A stretch of DNA of 64,000 nt from Tubulanus polymorphus (lineage: Eukaryota; Animalia; Nemertea), in NCBI RefSeq assembly GCF_964204645.1, contig NC_134035.1, positions 9,642,451-9,706,450 on the forward strand, written 5' to 3'. A model generated the notes under the pieces. It was given only the letters and a program-made list of their open reading frames with translations. It was not told the origin of the DNA and did no database searches. The translations under genes and the position numbers were made by a program. Shown in pieces: positions 50,786 through 64,000 of this stretch; position 1 is the first letter of the stretch; every line of letters begins with the position of its first letter.

Positions 50786-50999
50786 ATTCATTCATTCATT
50801 CATTCATTCATTCATTCATTCATTCATTCATTCATTCATTCATTCATTCATTCATTCTATTCGTTCATTCATTCATTCATTCATTCATTCATTCATTCTA
50901 TTCGTTCATTCATTCATTCATTCATTCTATTCGTTCATTCATTCATTCATTCATTCATTCATTCATTCGTTCGTTCATTCATTCAATTCGTTCATTCAT
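50786..50999. repeat. (TTCA)n microsatellite, partly interrupted; shorter one at ~11728-11770
   Basis: Directly visible. Confidence 0.95.
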
Positions 51000-55100: not shown

Positions 55101-56700
55101 AACACAAACCATTTGCTTTAGAAATATATAGATAAGCAGGGGCGGATCCAGGGACCACTGTCGAGGGTAGCGGCAACTTGGAAGGGCATCTTTAAAATAA
55201 AAGGGCATTCTGAAATTTTGAAAATCTGTTTTGCTGTAATTTCCAAGCAATTAAAGCCCTGTCGCGAAGTGCTTTCTAATGGCGAATTAACTGCATTGAG
55301 ATGTAGTTTTCGTGTAGACCAAAATCTTCAAGAATTATGTGCTTTTTGTTAGTAAAATTATCTACCTCGTCTTTAAAAAAAGATTAAAAAAGGCACGAGA
55401 TTTTCGCGACGGTAGCCCGTGCCTACAGTGCCATCTGAATCCGTGCCTGGTAATTTATTTACGCAATTATGAGAATAGGATACATCACTAAGTTAAAAAT
55501 GAGACCGCGGGAAATTATTGCGGCCAGACTGCATTTCATACGAGTGGCCGGGGCCGGGCCCGCAGCCGCGGCCGGCTTTTATACCCCACCATTGGAGCAT
55601 TCCAACATCGCGCACTTTAATATTGCATTCCGGAGATTTCGCATGGGAATTGGCGTACCGCGACGAGTTACATATGAACTTGACATGTAGCAGCTGACAC
55701 CGAGTAGCTCCCACACTGTGCGCGTAGCACACAATCCGGAGCACTCCTGCTGGGAAACATATCAGTCATGTGATTTCACAAAATGGTGGCAGTCCGGATT
55801 AGTAGTTGATCCGGCACGACAGTAGTTGATAAGTTTGGTTAAATAAAGATGTCATCTTTTTACCTAGTTAGTTACCTAATCGTTGGTGGTAAGCTTTTCA
55901 TAATCGGATGGGCTTATACCAACGTTAGGGATGACAAGGACCAAAACACGGTTGAAAAAAGTAACACTTCAAAAGTATACTTTCTATTCACTTCAGTCCA
56001 CAATTAATGGCTTAATTCACAAACTAACACAGGTACCTTTCGAAATAATCCAATTTTATGTATGTTTCGAGTGGTTAATCAACATTATTTTGAGAAATTA
56101 ATTAATTTCTCCACCAATTTCGCCATTGGCCGCCATTTCTCTGTATTGCACATGTGGCATGATAAGACAAGGGGACCTACAAGGATTTATATAAAACTTC
56201 CGAGACGAAACGACAATTTTTATTTTTGATGGTTTTCCAACTTATATTTCAAATCTTCTTGTTTTCCATAATAAATCATGAAATAATAAATTCTGGTAAA
56301 AGAAAAATGTGAATAAGTGTTGATTTCTTAATTTTTTTCAATTTCGTCGTTTCGCTTCGTTAGTTTGTGCTGTTGTCCTCGCCTCAACCCACAGGTGCCA
56401 GCACCTCCAGTAATTTTCAAAATGGCAGCTGTTGACCCGACGGAAATTTACTCTCACTTTACGGCCGATTTGCACATGGATTAAGATCGTCAGGTGAGGT
56501 GTTATAGGTATCAGACAAACTACGAATCTGTTGTGCGTCGATTACAACAAAAAATAGACGGATATCTTAAGAGACAATGAAATGCCAGGCAAATTACTCG
56601 TCAGTCAAATTGGCTGACGAAGATTTCATACAAAAATGACCTTCCCATTCCTGACTGTGGTTTGTGAAAATATCCGATTGTGAAACTAAACCACAGACAG

Positions 56701-56987: not shown

Positions 56988-59900
56988 GTCCCTATATTAG
57001 ATCTGTGTAGCTGACACCCAGTCCTGATTGAGACCTCTCTGTGCAGCTGACACCCAGTCCCTGTATTAGACCTGTGTAGCTGACACCCAGTCCCTATATT
57101 AGTCCTGTCCAGCTGACACCCAGTCCCTGTATTAGACCTGTGTAGCTGACACCCAGTCCCTGTATTAGACCTGTGTAGCTGACACCCAGTCCCTATATTA
57201 GTCCTGTCCAGCTGACACCCAGTCTCTGTATTAGACCTGTGTAGCTGACACCCAGTCCCTATATTAGTCCTGTCCAGCTGACACCCAGTCCCTGTATTAG
57301 ACCTATGTAGCTGATACCTAGTCCCTATATTAGCCGTGTGTAGCTGACACCCAGTCCCTGTATTAGACCTGTGTAGCTGACACCCAGTCCCTATATTAGT
57401 CCTGTGCAGCTGACACCCAGTCCCTATATTAGGTCCTGTGTAGCTGACACCCAGTCCCTGTATTAGGTCCTGTGTAGCTGACACCCAGTCCCTGTATTAG
57501 TCCTGTGTAGCTGACACCCAGTGCCTATATAATCCTTGTGTAGCTGACACCCAGTCCCTGTATTAGGTCCTGTGTAGCTGACACCCAGTCCCTGTATTAG
57601 GTCCTGTGTAGCTGACACCCAGTCCCTATATTAGTCCTGTGCAGCTGACACCCAGTCCCTGTATTAGACCTGTGTAGCTGATACCCAGTCCCTATATTAG
57701 CCCTGTGTAGCTGACACCCAGTCCCTGTATAAGGTCCTGTGTAGCTGACACCCAGTCCCTAGGCCTATATTAGACCTGTGTAGCTGACACCCAGTCACTG
57801 TATTAGCCCTGTGCAGCTGACACCCTGTCCATATATTAGTCCTGTGCAGCTGACACCCAGTCCCTGTATTAGACCTGTGTAGCTGATACCCAGTCCCTAT
57901 ATTAGCCCTGTGTAGCTGACACCCAGTCCCTGTATTAGGTCCTGTGTAGCTGACACCCAGTCCCTGTATTAGTCCTGTGTAGCTGACACCCAGTCCCTGT
58001 ATTAGGCCCTGTGTAGCTGACACCCAGTCCCTGTATTAGGTCCTGTAGCTGACACCCAGTCACTGTATTAGCCCTGTGCAGCTGACACCCAGTCCCTATA
58101 TTAGTCCTGTGTAGCTGACACCCAGTCCCTGTATAAGGTCCTGTGTAGCTGACACCCAGTCCCCATATTAGTCCTGTGTAGCTGACACCCAGTCCCTGTA
58201 TTAGACCTGTGTAGCTGATACCCAGTCCCTATATAAGGTCCTGTGTAGCTGACACCCAGTCCCTGTATTAGGTCCTGTGTAGCTGACACCCAGTCCCTGT
58301 ATTAGGTCCTGTGTAGCTGACACCCAGTCCCTGTATTAGTCCTGTGTAGCTGACACCCAGTGCCTATATAAGCCCTGTGTAGCTGACACCCAGTCCCTGT
58401 ATAAGGTCCTGTGTAGCTGACACCCAGTCCCTGTATAAGGTCCTGTGTAGCTGACACCCAGTCCCTGTATTAGGTCCTGTGTAGCTGACACCCAGTCCCT
58501 AGGCCTATATTAGACCTGTGTAGCTGACACCCAGTCACTGTATTAGCCCTGTGCAGCTGACACCCAGTCCCTATATTAGTCATGTGCAGCTGACACCCAG
58601 TCCCTACATTAGTCCTGTGCAGCTGACACCCAGTCCCTATATTAGTCCTGTGCAGCTGACACCCAGTCCCTGTATTAGGTCCTGTGTAGCTGACACCCAG
58701 TCCCTGTATTAGGTCCTGTGTAGCTGACACCCAGTCCCTGTATTAGTCCTGTGCAGCTGACACCCAGTGCCTATATAAGCCCTGTGTAGCTGACACCCAG
58801 TCCCTGTATTAGGTCCTGTGTAGCTGACACCCAGTCCCTGTATAAGGTCCTGTGTAGCTGACACCCAGTCCCTGTATAAGGTCCTGTGTAGCTGACACCC
58901 AGTCCCTAGGCCTATATTAGACCTGTGTAGCTGACACCCAGTCACTGTATTAGCCCTGTGCAGCTGACACCCAGTCCCTATATTAGTCATGTGCAGCTGA
59001 CACCCAGTCCCTACATTAGTCCTGTGCAGCTGACACCCAGTCCCTGTATTAGGTCCTGTGTAGCTGTCACCCAGTCCCTGTATTAGTCCTGTGTAGCTGA
59101 CACCCAGTGCCTATATAAGCCCTGTGTAGCTGACACCCAGTCCCTGTATTAGGTCCTGTGTAGCTGACACCCAGTCCCTGTATTAGGTCCTGTGTAGCTG
59201 ACACCCAGTCCCTATATTAGTCCTGTGCAGCTGACACCCAGTCCCTGTATTTGACCTGTGTAGCTGATACCCAGTCCCTATATTAGGTCCTGTGTAGCTG
59301 ACACCCAGTCCCTGTATTAGGTCCTGTGTAGCTGACACCCAGTCCGTGTATTAGTCCTGTGTAGCTGACACCCAGTGCCTATATAAGCCCTGTGTAGCTG
59401 ACACCCAGTCCCTGTATTAGGTCCTGTGTAGCTGACACCCAGTCCCTGTATTAGGTCCTGTGTAGCTGACACCCAGTCCCTATATTAGTCCTGTGCAGCT
59501 GACACCCAGTCCCTGTATTAGGTCCTGTGTAGCTGACACCCAGTCCCTATATTAGTCCTGTGCAGCTGACACCCAGTCCCTGTATTTGACCTGTGTAGCT
59601 GACACCCAGTCCCTATATTAGTCCTGTGCAGCTGACACCCAGTCCCTGTATTTGACCTGTGTAGCTGACACCCAGTCCCTGTATTAGGTCCTGTGTAGCT
59701 GACACCCAGTCCCTGTATTAGGTCCTGTGTAGCTGACACCCAGTCCGTGTATTAGTCCTGTGTAGCTGACACCCAGTGCCTATATAAGCCCTGTGTAGCT
59801 GACACCCAGTCCCTATATTAGTCCTGAGCAGCTGACACCCAGTCCCTGTATTAGACCTGTGTAGCTGATACCCAGTCCCTATATTAGTCCTGTGTAGCTG

Positions 59901-60056
59901 ACACCCAGTCCCTGTATAAGGTCCTGTGTAGCTGACACCCAGTCCCCATATTAGTCCTTTGTATCTGACACCCAGTCCCTGTATTAGGTCCTGTGTAGCT
60001 GACACCCAGTCCTTATATTAGGTCCTGTGTAACTGACACCCAGTCTCTGTATTAGG
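56988..60056. repeat. Minisatellite, 33-34 bp unit (GTAGCTGACACCCAGTCCCTGTATTAG(G)TCCTGT), roughly 90 copies, inside a transposase intron
   Basis: Directly visible tandem array; it generates the GTGCQLHR-repeat ORFs. Confidence 0.97.
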
Positions 60057-60254
60057 ACTTTTGACATCAAGATCAGGCACTCCTTTATCCTGACTCAATT
60101 AGCATTGCGTTATTCGTGGTATGAAATGTAAGCGCAATGTTATTGGGAAAGAATATGGTAGTCGCCATAAACAACGCACCCAGTCATACTTTTCAGCAGA
60201 ATGTATTTCTAGTTATAGCGATATGCTTTGGAGTTCATTTCCTTTCTTTGGTAG

Positions 60255-61360
60255 GTTCAGTATAAAATGTTTCAAAGATTGCGCACCAAGAGCACATTAC
60301 CATTGCTATTACTGCCCATATCAATCATCTGAAAAAGCAAGGATATTGAAACATATGAATACTTGTGACTGTGGGTCGAAAAAACCAAGATCTGTTAATT
60401 TACCGGTAAAGCAAGTGAATGATAGCAGCGATGTGCAGCCTGTTGGTTGTCCATTTTGCAGTAAGAAGTTTAGCCGTCAGTGGGAAAAACAACACATTGC
60501 AACTTGCCGCATGCAACAATGCCAATCCAGTAAAGCAATATCAAAGTCATATCACCACAAATCTGTTGAAGTTGACACAAACAATGGTATATTTGCTGTT
60601 TTCCCATCTGCAACAGCGCGTTCAGTACCAATTCATGTTCAGAGGAAAACAAGTGTACCAGCATCTGTATTTTGTGAAAACAAAATTTGCAGGGATGCCA
60701 AAACAGCTGCAGTCATCTCTGGGAATAACTCGTTTGAATGTCGTCATGTTAAATCTGTTGAATTTGCTTCAGCACAACAAAGCTCTCCTTTAGATGATAG
60801 TTATCTAATGGACCTTATGAGAAGAAAATTAATCAAGGATGAACGATTTGATGATATAACAAGACTTGCAAGATCTGCAGAAGCTGATACCATACCATTA
60901 GTATCGTTGATAACTTGTGATAGTCCACGCTATCAGTATTTTTCTGTACATACTACTCGAAGAAGATGTTATAGCCTACTTAGGCGTGTTGTAATTATTT
61001 TTGATAATGTGCAGAAATCTTTCCGATGCAGTTGTTGTAAAGGTGCGTTATATTGCAACCACAAGTCCTGTGTCAAGTGGTATATGAACCAATATACACC
61101 AGAAGCTTTGATTAATAATCCTTCTGAAAATGAGGATAATGGTGCCCAATGTGTTCAGACTGAAGACCAACTACAGATGAAGTACATATTGGATCAAAAG
61201 CGTGTACCATCTGTGATAAACCATCCACATCCTGTCAACTCTTCAGTCAACCATGAAGTCGTGCCAGCTGAAGCTACTTGTTTTCATTGTAATGGTACTT
61301 AAGAAAGGCTAAAACGTACATCATCTGCAAAAATATATGATGTACAAAGAATAATAAAAG
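60255..61360 (+). pseudogene. Zisupton transposase exon: Zn fingers plus SWIM domain, with premature TAA at 61300-61302
   Basis: Acceptor ttctttggtag|G. Contains HYHCYYC, CPFC..H..C, PIHVQRK..CENKIC..ECRH and SWIM at 61021-61080. The frame continues past TAA (ERLKRTSSAKIYDVQRIIK) to donor G|GTAAGA at 61360. Confidence 0.8.
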
Positions 61361-61449
61361 GTAAGATATTCATACATAGGTTCAATAGTTCTATTCAAGC
61401 GATCAACCAATTCATAGATAAATTGATAAACTTTCATAAAAAATTTCAG

Positions 61450-61589
61450 ATGTGTCAGTATACATCAAGAAGTGTGAAGTTTGTGGCATGCAGTATCGAT
61501 ACCAGGAATGGTGTGATGGAATTCATAATTTTGATAACCACACATTCTTGTCTATAGCATTATGTCAACTCATAAGAGCAGGATTGAAG
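61450..61589 (+). pseudogene. Zisupton transposase exon (CxC cysteine cluster)
   Basis: tttcag|AT...: DVSVYIKKCEVCGMQYRYQEWCDGIHNFDNHTFLSIALCQLIRAGLK|gtagct; phases consistent with neighbours. Confidence 0.8.
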
Positions 61590-61682
61590 GTAGCTTTTAT
61601 GTACTGAGTAATAACGAAGCATGGTGCAATATGAATAACAGTAACTTTACTTGAAATATTATATATCACTTTACTTTCTTAG

Positions 61683-61884
61683 GAACATGTGTCCATTCAA
61701 ACATCCGTGAAAATGGTGGCAGCTCTCAACGTCGATGATATTCCATTGAATAAGATACAGCACGCTTATCTTCATTTTGAGGCTCTTTGCAATCACAGCT
61801 ATGCTTTCACCTGTGCTGTATGTGGTTTTCATCCACCAATTCTTATATGGGATACATTCCGTGAAGCTTGCTTCAGATATGCTG
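61683..61884 (+). pseudogene. Zisupton transposase exon (probable first catalytic Asp, ILIWD)
   Basis: ctttcttag|EHVSIQTSV...AYLHFEALCNHSYAFTCAVCGFHPPILIWDTFREACFRYA|gtaatt. Confidence 0.8.
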
Positions 61885-61988
61885 GTAATTGTACTTTTTC
61901 ATTGACATCTGTTTTGTCTGAAAAATTTCATATTCTGTAGAAATGATTCAGATCAAGGGATTTTTACACTTCCAAATACATTTTCCAG

Positions 61989-62096
61989 CTTCAGAACTGA
62001 AACCACCAAGTGCAAGAAATGAAGAGGTTAATTGCGAGAAGTTCTGGAGAGAAGTTGAGTTAGAAATGCTATACAGAGGTCATGGTGCACAGAAAG
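61989..62096 (+). pseudogene. Zisupton transposase exon
   Basis: ttttccag|ASELKPPSARNEEVNCEKFWREVELEMLYRGHGAQK|gtatcc; phase 1 at both ends. Confidence 0.75.
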
Positions 62097-62184
62097 GTAT
62101 CCTAGGCCCAGGCTGGTTTGGTTTTATTATCATAATAGTTGCTGAAAGTCTTAATTATACATGTATACTGGTGAATATATTCAG

Positions 62185-62357
62185 ATCACAGAGTAATCCC
62201 AACATATGAAGCGTGGAGTCCATGGATTGGAGAGAAAACTAGAAGATCATCGATGTTGATTAACACTGAATATGAGAAATGCTCAGTGGAGGCAGGATTA
62301 GAGGGTTCTGAGCCAATTCCTGAGGAAACTATTGAGCATCTTTTGAAGAATGAAAAG
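62185..62357 (+). pseudogene. Zisupton transposase exon ending in a GC donor
   Basis: ttcag|DHRVIPTYEAWSPWIGEKTRRSSMLINTEYEK...EHLLKNEK|GCAAGT. Confidence 0.75.
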
Positions 62358-62491
62358 GCAAGTAATGTGAAACCTATTCACTATATGCTTCACTCAATTG
62401 TAAAAATGAGAATTATGGGAGGTTATCATTTATGATTTATGTACATAAAGCCTACTTGTAACTCTCTATATTTATCCTTCATGCTAAACAG

Positions 62492-62627
62492 GTCAAGAAT
62501 ATTCGTGCATTTTGTCGCAGAGCAAAAGTGGACAGTTAAGGTTCAGCAATGGACATGATACGCCGTCTGAGGGACATATCTAGAGCATCCTTCGACAGTA
62601 TTTATGAAGATGTATTTGGACACTCAG
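62492..62627 (+). pseudogene. Zisupton transposase exon: SAP-like domain, with premature TAA at 62537-62539
   Basis: aaacag|VKNIRAFCRRAKVDS*GSAMDMIRRLRDISRASFDSIYEDVFGHS|gtaatc. Confidence 0.75.
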
Positions 62628-62840
62628 GTAATCTAATGTGTTCAGGTGTTCTCAAATTAGTTGACTTCTTCATGTATGTGTTGATTGAAAGCTGCTTCTG
62701 ACAAGTTGTTTACAGCGGATAGAAATCCCTTGGTCATTGAGACTTCAAAATAGAAATATCAGCACATATGTCTTCTTAGGTACAGGGGCATTTGCATATC
62801 TGCTAAAAAAACTTGCCTTTACCTATTTCATTTTTTTCAG

Positions 62841-64000
62841 GTGGATGGGCAGTTGGTTGTTGTCCACATGGTGTATCGTATGCGATAAAAAATAATTTTC
62901 GAGGTGAAAGTCCGAGGGATTATGTTGACCTGTTAAGAGGCATGAAACATCAGCCAACAATATCGATCTGTGATGTTGCCCATCTTGTGGCAAACTTTGC
63001 AAACTCCCGTTTTGACCAGATGTTTGGCCCAAATGATGGTCGACTGGCTGAAGCTAATGAAGATAATATACGGCGAGCAAAATCACATGAGCTAACTTTC
63101 AAAGCCGAATTTTTGGATGATATCAATAAACCGTATGAAATTTGTGATGATCCAGTTCATCCAGTTAAAAAATCCAATCATCACTATGCTTTATATGACT
63201 GGTTTCATCAGGAAAACTGTAAATCTGAGACAGAAATACTCAGACGTATATCCCTAGTAGATAATATTGCTGGTTTCATTGATTCAGAACGTGATGAACA
63301 GGAGTTCAGTCAACGCAAAAAAGATATCTATTTCTTAAATAAGATGAAACCAGGGACACACATGTTTGTCTTCAGACTTATCACTCATCTGCGTAATGAG
63401 TCTATCAATCTAATGCTCAACAAAAAGATGAAAGACCATCTGGGAAGCATTCAGCAGGACCCTATTGGTCGTACAATTCAGGCCCCAAAAGGATCAATGC
63501 AAAAACATGCTGATTGCAATAAAAAAGTAGAAAAATCCACCATCTCAATAACTCGCCGACTGCCAGAACAGAATATTTCATCAAATCAGTCGCGGGTTGA
63601 TGAAGTTTCATTACGGTCTAGATGTTTGTCCTTTATTAATAAACTCACAAATCCAAAAATTCTCAATGCATTCATCGATTTGAACATTAGTGAAATGTGT
63701 GGTGAAGAATTACGTGGAGTACATGACAACCTCCTTTATGCGTCAACGGTTATTGGAAAAACTGCTCCATCGCACAGACATATTGAAGTAAGAGCAAATT
63801 GTGATGGAGTCATGTACATGCAGACTCAAGGGAGTACAAATTATTGTGGTCTGTGTGCTGTCAATAATTTAGTTGGCGCAAGCGCAATCTCGATCAAATA
63901 TATGGATAGTATATCTGATGCTTTGTGGATTGGACAACTGTTGAATCCAGGAATTGGTCCAACATGCCGTATTCTTCCTCCTAGAGATCTGGAGGGATTC
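62841..64000 (+). pseudogene. Zisupton transposase exon: KDZ catalytic core followed by a Josephin-like protease motif (open to window end)
   Basis: tttttttcag|GGWAVGCCPHGVSYAIKNNFRGESPRDYVDLLRGMKHQPTISICDVAH...YALYDWFHQENCK...FIDSERDEQEFSQRKKDIYFLNKMKP...YMQTQGSTNYCGLCAVNNLVG...RDLEGF. 386 codons with no stop; absent from the ORF track, probably because it is unterminated. Confidence 0.8.

Follow-up and report, generated by a model that had tools for sequence, protein, structure and literature searches.

The question raised by the locus described here is whether a transposase gene of the nemertean Tubulanus polymorphus carries, within its own reading frame, a genuine deubiquitinase of the Josephin family, and to what kind of element such a gene belongs. 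The locus was found at the end of a 64,000-nt stretch of DNA, called the window in the following (contig NC_134035.1:9642451-9706450, C11, from an assembly of 268 Mb in 77 contigs), which had been read from its sequence alone as encoding a Zisupton/KDZ transposase fused in frame to a Josephin-like (ataxin-3-type) motif. The contig sequence past the window was fetched as L004 (L004 position = window position - 59549), whereby coordinates above 64000 are window-equivalent positions on the same contig; exons were searched individually, the public gene model P0001 being the sole spliced product used. The reading that explains the locus best as a whole, to which we assign a probability of about 0.8, is that of a 21.4-kb KDZ/Zisupton transposon of the CxC4 lineage, with a multi-exon transposase that includes a genuine Josephin domain, probably a deubiquitinase taken to chromatin.

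Translation of 62840-64000 reproduced the peptide from which the sequence-only reading started (it corresponds to the last 63 codons of this part of the exon, with TGT as the Cys codon) and confirmed that transposase and Josephin-like motif share a single open exon, which runs uninterrupted from 62840 and holds the motif in frame with the transposase-core homology of exon residues 1-200. Upon translation of the contig beyond the window, no early stop was met; rather, the frame stays open for 126 further codons up to a TGA, and the catalytic His and Asn/Asp, which had been expected past the window end, were located there as a His-Trp pair followed 16 residues on by Leu-Leu-Asp-Ser (codon positions are given in Table 1). 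The window itself holds about 63 of the approximately 185 domain residues. Since the Pfam Josephin family (PF02099) matches the last ~195 exon residues (L004:4242-4826) with 42.1 bits and an E-value of 1e-10 at a gathering cut-off of 26, the Josephin motif does not stand in the transposase exon by chance. No other Pfam family matched these residues even at E<=10, and peptidase families C39 and C48 are hence without match.

For closer characterization an alignment of 14 sequences (A1) was used, comprising the Josephin-like part of 11 homologues, the window copy and two paralogues of the same genome. All 14 match PF02099 at E<=0.01 (best 1.8e-16), and at a mean column identity of 42% the residues Q13, G14, C19, C22, N25, N26, D43, R65, G69, H131, D147 and S148 are invariant. 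Comparison of the A1 profile with the PDB returned ATXN3L, ataxin-3 and Josephin-2 as the only matches (E 9e-6 to 1e-4), with the catalytic Cys and the E-H-W and L-N/D-S motifs in register with ATXN3 and ATXN3L and with Asp147 at the position of ataxin-3 Asn134. An AlphaFold2 model of the domain, computed from A1, reached a predicted local distance difference test score of 86.7 and a predicted template modelling score of 0.82, and the Foldseek matches of this model, headed by 3o65, 1yzb, 2dos, 6pgv and 2aga (E 3.5e-9 to 2.5e-5), support the Josephin variant of the papain-like fold; eukaryotic Josephins were followed by bacterial Josephin-like deubiquitinases and clippases and these by C39 peptidases (E ~5e-3). 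In the ESM Atlas, Josephin families made up six of the six top clusters. Two other folds were considered and ruled out: a C39-like peptidase, brought into play by the Q-x5-C spacing, which in addition to the missing Pfam match gave Z and E values worse than those of every Josephin, and an Ulp1 (C48) fold, which was absent among the fold matches listed. Profile and structure searches alike thus rank Josephin above C39, as the sequence-only reading had it.

The domain therefore truly belongs to the papain-like cysteine isopeptidases of the MJD/Josephin family, with the full catalytic set of oxyanion Gln, Cys, His and Asp, and its sequence predicts an active ubiquitin isopeptidase. As compared to the known Josephin/MJD deubiquitinases (ataxin-3, ATXN3L and JOSD1/2; PF02099), identity amounts to about 20%. 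The spacing is Gln-x5-Cys where ataxin-3 has x4, Asp replaces Asn134, and unlike in ataxin-3 and the JOSD proteins the domain resides within a transposase of more than 1000 residues, without UIM or UBX partners. The host genome also holds two canonical multi-exon Josephin genes (C1:4270031-4270823 and C4:27131877-27133938, scoring up to 69 bits to PF02099), from which the transposon-borne Josephin is distinct as a divergent third kind.

Given such a domain, its substrate might still differ from that of its eukaryotic relatives. Of the alternatives considered, the one that survives best, unlikely as it is, assumes activity on another ubiquitin-like modifier (SUMO, NEDD8 or other) or irreversible clipping of ubiquitin in the manner of the bacterial Josephin-like clippases. 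The bacterial enzymes (PcJOS, BpJOS and PaJOS) are secreted effectors, some of which cut ubiquitin upstream of Gly-Gly, but they scored below the eukaryotic Josephins, which stand 3-5 Z units above them; moreover, we know of no eukaryotic Josephin that prefers SUMO.

The domain is not C-terminal in the protein, as had been assumed, but internal, since six codons upstream of the large-exon stop a canonical donor (GAT/GTGAGT) leads to 22-codon GT-AG mini-exons, predicted from the sequence and each contained in a 164-bp tandem repeat unit, and from there to two PHD-finger exons (PHD1 with 32.6 bits at a cut-off of 24, PHD2 weak). The paralogous copies on C4 and C6 have these two PHD exons, too, in conserved order behind their Josephin exon, and PHD is likewise terminal in the relatives P0020 and P0027. 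The 164-bp repeat (L004:4952-5890, i.e., 64501-65439) comprises 5.7 copies that are 97% alike, each with a GT-AG-bounded mini-exon of 66 nt for an acidic, Ser/Thr-rich unit of 22 amino acids; its core, V-V-T-D-M-T-S-S-E-L, has a counterpart in P0111, where the Josephin domain is followed by repeats of V-V-S-D-M-S-x-S-S-E-L, and might represent a SUMO-interaction-type motif. Upstream of the Josephin domain, the full-length relatives P0013, P0020, P0023 and P0027 are collinear, exon by exon, with window ~60290-63570 (tblastn). Stops within the aligned gene are confined to query gaps, which are intron-like, except for a TAA in the SAP-like exon, where paralogues and relatives read Lys-Gly-Ser with Lys at the stop position; because of this TAA the public gene model P0001 (838 aa), which covers the 3' part of the gene, begins at the Met just after it. 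SAP itself was weak in a paralogue (14 bits) and above cut-off in the relative P0068.

With the 512-residue large exon as query, HMMER was run exhaustively against 1.84 billion representative sequences and identified 579 homologues at E<=1e-3. When the Josephin region of P0001 was used in a word-indexed protein search, the self-match alone was returned, which is uninformative on rarity, as HMMER did find relatives. Among the HMMER homologues, further fusions of core and Josephin are found in the bivalves Sinanodonta woodiana and Crassostrea virginica and in the nemertean Lineus longissimus; the domain combination is common to an entire transposon lineage. Two of these three proteins carry the automatic UniRef name 'ubiquitinyl hydrolase 1', and proteins so named in mollusc and nemertean proteomes are transposon genes and not host deubiquitinases. 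The segment that follows the core in the retrieved proteins is Josephin in ~12 representative clusters (the window's own excluded), Ulp1 in ~7 and USP in 4. In P0023 (Branchiostoma lanceolatum, XP_066301003.1) the core is followed by USP (PF00443, 85 bits), a second and unrelated deubiquitinase family, together with Ulp1, and P0132 combines Josephin with Ulp1. The idea that this lineage swapped in or captured a different protease is thus borne out as far as the presence of Josephin is concerned, but a swap is too simple a description, given that Josephin with Ulp1, USP with or without Ulp1, and Ulp1 alone all occur. In an unrooted tree of the cores, from which fragmentary rows were left out, 10 of the 12 sequences with Josephin group together (support 89/71) as sister to a PHD-ending group, and the other two lie in a polytomy; the USP-bearing and most of the Ulp1-bearing cores lie across a branch with support 96/92. 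A single origin of the Josephin fusion may accordingly be compatible with the core tree.

As a further, tentative idea, which we consider more doubtful than probable, the region after the core could be regarded as a cassette in which Josephin, USP and Ulp1, i.e., unrelated isopeptidases, take each other's place, often together with PHD as chromatin reader. Removal of ubiquitin or SUMO from the transposase or from chromatin would then be either indispensable for transposition or a counter-defence that transposons generally use against silencing dependent on SUMO or ubiquitin. If this were true, the Josephin clade with its recently mobile copies would offer an experimentally tractable entry point. 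The occupants of this position also bear on the possibility that Josephin serves as a processing protease, which like viral papain-like proteases would cut the transposase polyprotein in cis and free either the core or the tail of repeats and PHD fingers. This is held to be clearly improbable, as the Ub/SUMO-specific USP and/or Ulp1 occupy the same post-core position in relatives and as the nearest relatives of the domain, in sequence as in fold, are all ubiquitin isopeptidases.

The assignment of the transposase to Zisupton/KDZ was found to hold at the level of the superfamily, based on CxC4, an 8-bp target-site duplication (TSD), terminal inverted repeats (TIRs) and the SAP and Ulp1 domains of relatives. 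A KDZ-associated CxC cluster N-terminal to the core is present, whereby PF18717 passed its cut-off here and in most of the full-length relatives tested; relatives carry CxC4, SAP (above cut-off in P0068) and Ulp1, and for exon residues 1-230, PF18758 KDZ clusters account for 22 of 30 language-model neighbours, with scores of 0.94-0.95. Several other results make this assignment less firm. PF18758, the Pfam KDZ family, is without match at the locus at E<=1, though other elements of the genome do match it, and hhalign comparison with these PF18758-type elements gave an E-value of 0.06 over 33 columns, restricted to the motif NT(E/Q)..EQ.F and obtained with a template of low diversity. In addition, the fish relatives retrieved carry CxC4, whereas CxC7 is the cluster defined by the platyfish Zisupton type element (PMC12062965). 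Because of the missing PF18758 match, the motif-only hhalign result and the difference between CxC7 and CxC4, the element was assigned to the CxC4-bearing animal lineage of the KDZ/Zisupton superfamily and not placed in Zisupton sensu stricto. A separate KDZ family of the same genome does match PF18758 (C10:8771202, C2:16478382, C2:16499436, C3:16174786, C2:18037178 and others); identical open reading frame (ORF) pieces on different chromosomes were found in 4 of its 5 fetched copies, which suggests that this family was recently active.

The boundaries of the element follow from its ends: copies of ACCGCGAC sit exactly outside both inverted ends, and hence the element spans 55665-77099 (21,435 bp, so that the window ends inside it) and is flanked by an 8-bp TSD, which is a Zisupton hallmark (PMC12730594). 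Within the 29.5 kb compared, ACCGCGAC occurs just twice, each copy abutting an inverted-repeat end. The TIRs are imperfect, with 55684-55716 matching 77048-77080 and 76932-76964 in inverted orientation at 94% over 33 bp. In the same 29.5 kb no inverted copy of the subterminal 33-bp tandem array was found at the right end, a side that is occupied by a BEL/Pao insertion. This nested retroelement in the 3' part has a pol ORF of 1077 aa (L018:111-3344, i.e., 69660-72893) with Peptidase_A17, reverse transcriptase, integrase and DUF5641. With one nonsense codon, the TAA described above, and the nested BEL/Pao retroelement, the window copy is dead.

A related family has moved recently. With the Josephin domain as query, full-length domains were identified on C4, C6 and C1 (47-50% identity) along with fragments on C8. 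The C4 and C6 copies are elements of ~16 kb that are 98.3% identical over 12.9 kb and ~50% diverged from the window copy; they share an identical large exon, from the C-terminal part of the core to Josephin, and have TIRs of ~140 bp as well as arrays of a 59-bp tandem repeat at either end, inverted relative to each other. Their 8-bp TSDs differ (CGCTATAC and ATCCATAT), and these different TSDs together with the identical large exon on two chromosomes show that the Josephin-bearing sister family transposed recently. In the C4 copy stops are found only in intron-like gaps; the copy on C1 is interrupted by a nonsense codon. The fragments on C8 (C8:2760587-2761133, C8:4110384-4110933 and C8:4339954-4340484) are Josephin-like, contain stops, share 38-48% identity with the window domain and probably represent related elements in decay. 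Between window copy and paralogues, identity amounts to 54-66% in the core, 31-33% in the linker and 45-49% in the Josephin domain. Nonsynonymous divergence is lower in Josephin than in the linker, a pattern expected if the domain were under selection; synonymous divergence is saturated, and the comparison thus consists of nonsynonymous divergence and percent identity by region.

These data also speak to the idea that the locus is a domesticated host gene, i.e., a transposase-derived chromatin protein with deubiquitinase and not a mobile element. While a public model (P0001) exists for the 3' part and homologues of other species are annotated as ordinary uncharacterised genes, the gene is bracketed by TIRs and an 8-bp TSD, a conserved exon carries a nonsense codon, a retroelement is nested in the locus, and the sister family inserted at two sites, with TSDs that differ and a large exon that does not, which renders domestication very improbable. 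Just as remote is the notion of a catalytically dead, ubiquitin-binding pseudo-enzyme, for which nothing specific speaks beyond its being conceivable for any divergent protease domain and against which speaks that none of the 14 aligned sequences, divergent as they are, departs from Gln, Cys, His and Asp.

Based on this, a mode of action may be proposed for the Josephin-bearing transposase, the predicted parts of which are, from the N-terminus, a zinc-finger region, CxC4, the core with its SAP-like insert, Josephin, acidic repeats from the mini-exons and two PHD fingers. The transposase would bring its own deubiquitinase to chromatin, with SAP and CxC4 binding DNA and the PHD fingers binding histone H3 tails. 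Josephin would then strip ubiquitin or a ubiquitin-like modifier off its own transposase or, at donor and target site, off chromatin or repair factors, and the element might thereby be protected from ubiquitin/SUMO-dependent turnover or silencing. Catalytic activity and substrate are here inferred from the domain, and the counter-silencing or stabilising role is purely conjectural.

Zisupton/KDZ transposons were reportedly described by Bohne et al. 2012 and Iyer et al. 2014. The element shares with them the 8-bp TSD, the TIRs, a large multi-domain transposase with CxC cluster and SAP, and relatives with a downstream Ulp1; it differs from them in that Josephin replaces Ulp1 (one relative has both) and by its two PHD fingers, long subterminal tandem arrays and a core without PF18758 match, and from platyfish Zisupton in particular by CxC4 in place of CxC7. 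Ulp1 is also found in plant MULE and CACTA elements. An OTU protease of unknown function occurs in Helentrons (PMC6431247), and as in these, a cysteine protease of a ubiquitin or ubiquitin-like family accompanies the transposition enzyme, by fusion or as a co-encoded protein, but protease family and transposase superfamily are others here. A link to the ubiquitin system is further given by the F-box isoform of platyfish Zisupton (PMC12062965). Closest by content are Dualen non-LTR retrotransposons and some Chlamys Penelope-like elements, which encode a Josephin-related cysteine protease for which interference with protein degradation was proposed (PMC8557442; PMC9977147). Compared by description only, these too are mobile elements encoding a Josephin-like protease, but their hosts are green algae, charophytes and protists and they move as retrotransposons, whereas the present case concerns a cut-and-paste DNA transposon of animals. 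A full-text literature search, the coverage of which did not extend to the founding papers (Bohne 2012; Iyer 2014), returned no Josephin-bearing KDZ/Zisupton transposon, in line with the statement of the sequence-only reading that no description of the fusion was known to it. Ubiquitin and ubiquitin-like proteases of transposons (Ulp1, OTU, Josephin-like) have thus been seen repeatedly, and the literature examined assigns no function to them. The present lineage combines three isopeptidase families after homologous cores with recently moved copies that have intact ends and open exons, so that the need of a cut-and-paste transposase for a deubiquitinase or deSUMOylase can be tested cleanly, by comparison as well as by experiment.

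Table 1. Features of the element and its transposase gene (window coordinates; positions above 64000 are window-equivalent)
Feature	Position	Strand	Basis and remarks
Left 8-bp TSD, ACCGCGAC	55657..55664	+	twin at 77100-77107 (C11:9719550-9719557)
Left TIR	55665..55716	+	tip GAGTTACATATGA, like tip of C4/C6 sister family; best-matching 33 bp at 55684-55716
Subterminal 33-bp tandem array, ~91 copies	56988..60055	.	Tandem Repeats Finder; just upstream of transposase start
First coding exon (ORF-delimited), N-terminal Cys/His-rich region	60121..61302	+	393-aa ORF; collinear tblastn to P0013, P0020, P0023, P0027
CxC4 cysteine-cluster exon piece (KDZ-transposase-associated)	61446..61586	+	PF18717, 29.6 bits, cut-off 26.9 (L004:1897-2037)
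Middle core exons, short introns between	approximately 61689-61922, 61982-62080, 62190-62372	+	collinear tblastn high-scoring segment pairs
SAP-like exon	62492..62628	+	in-frame TAA at 62537-62539
Large exon	62840..64000, onward to donor after 64357 and ORF stop (TGA) 64376-64378	+	translation; 579 homologues
Layout of large exon	residues 1-200; 201-318; thereafter		C-terminal part of transposase core; variable linker; Josephin domain
Josephin domain, N-terminal third	63791..64000 (domain to about 64350)	+	PF02099, invariant columns, PDB profile matches, fold matches
Josephin catalytic positions	Gln13 63827-63829; Cys19 63845-63847; His131 64181-64183; Asp147 64229-64231		last two beyond the window

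The 33-bp repeat of the subterminal array was also found in kilobase arrays at C1:19.31 and 19.47 Mb, C8:7.76 Mb and C9:6.53 Mb, and these arrays could stem from additional or decayed copies of the element family or else form a satellite derived from it. Outside the element, the window holds an (ATTC)n microsatellite of ~52 units at 50786-50999.
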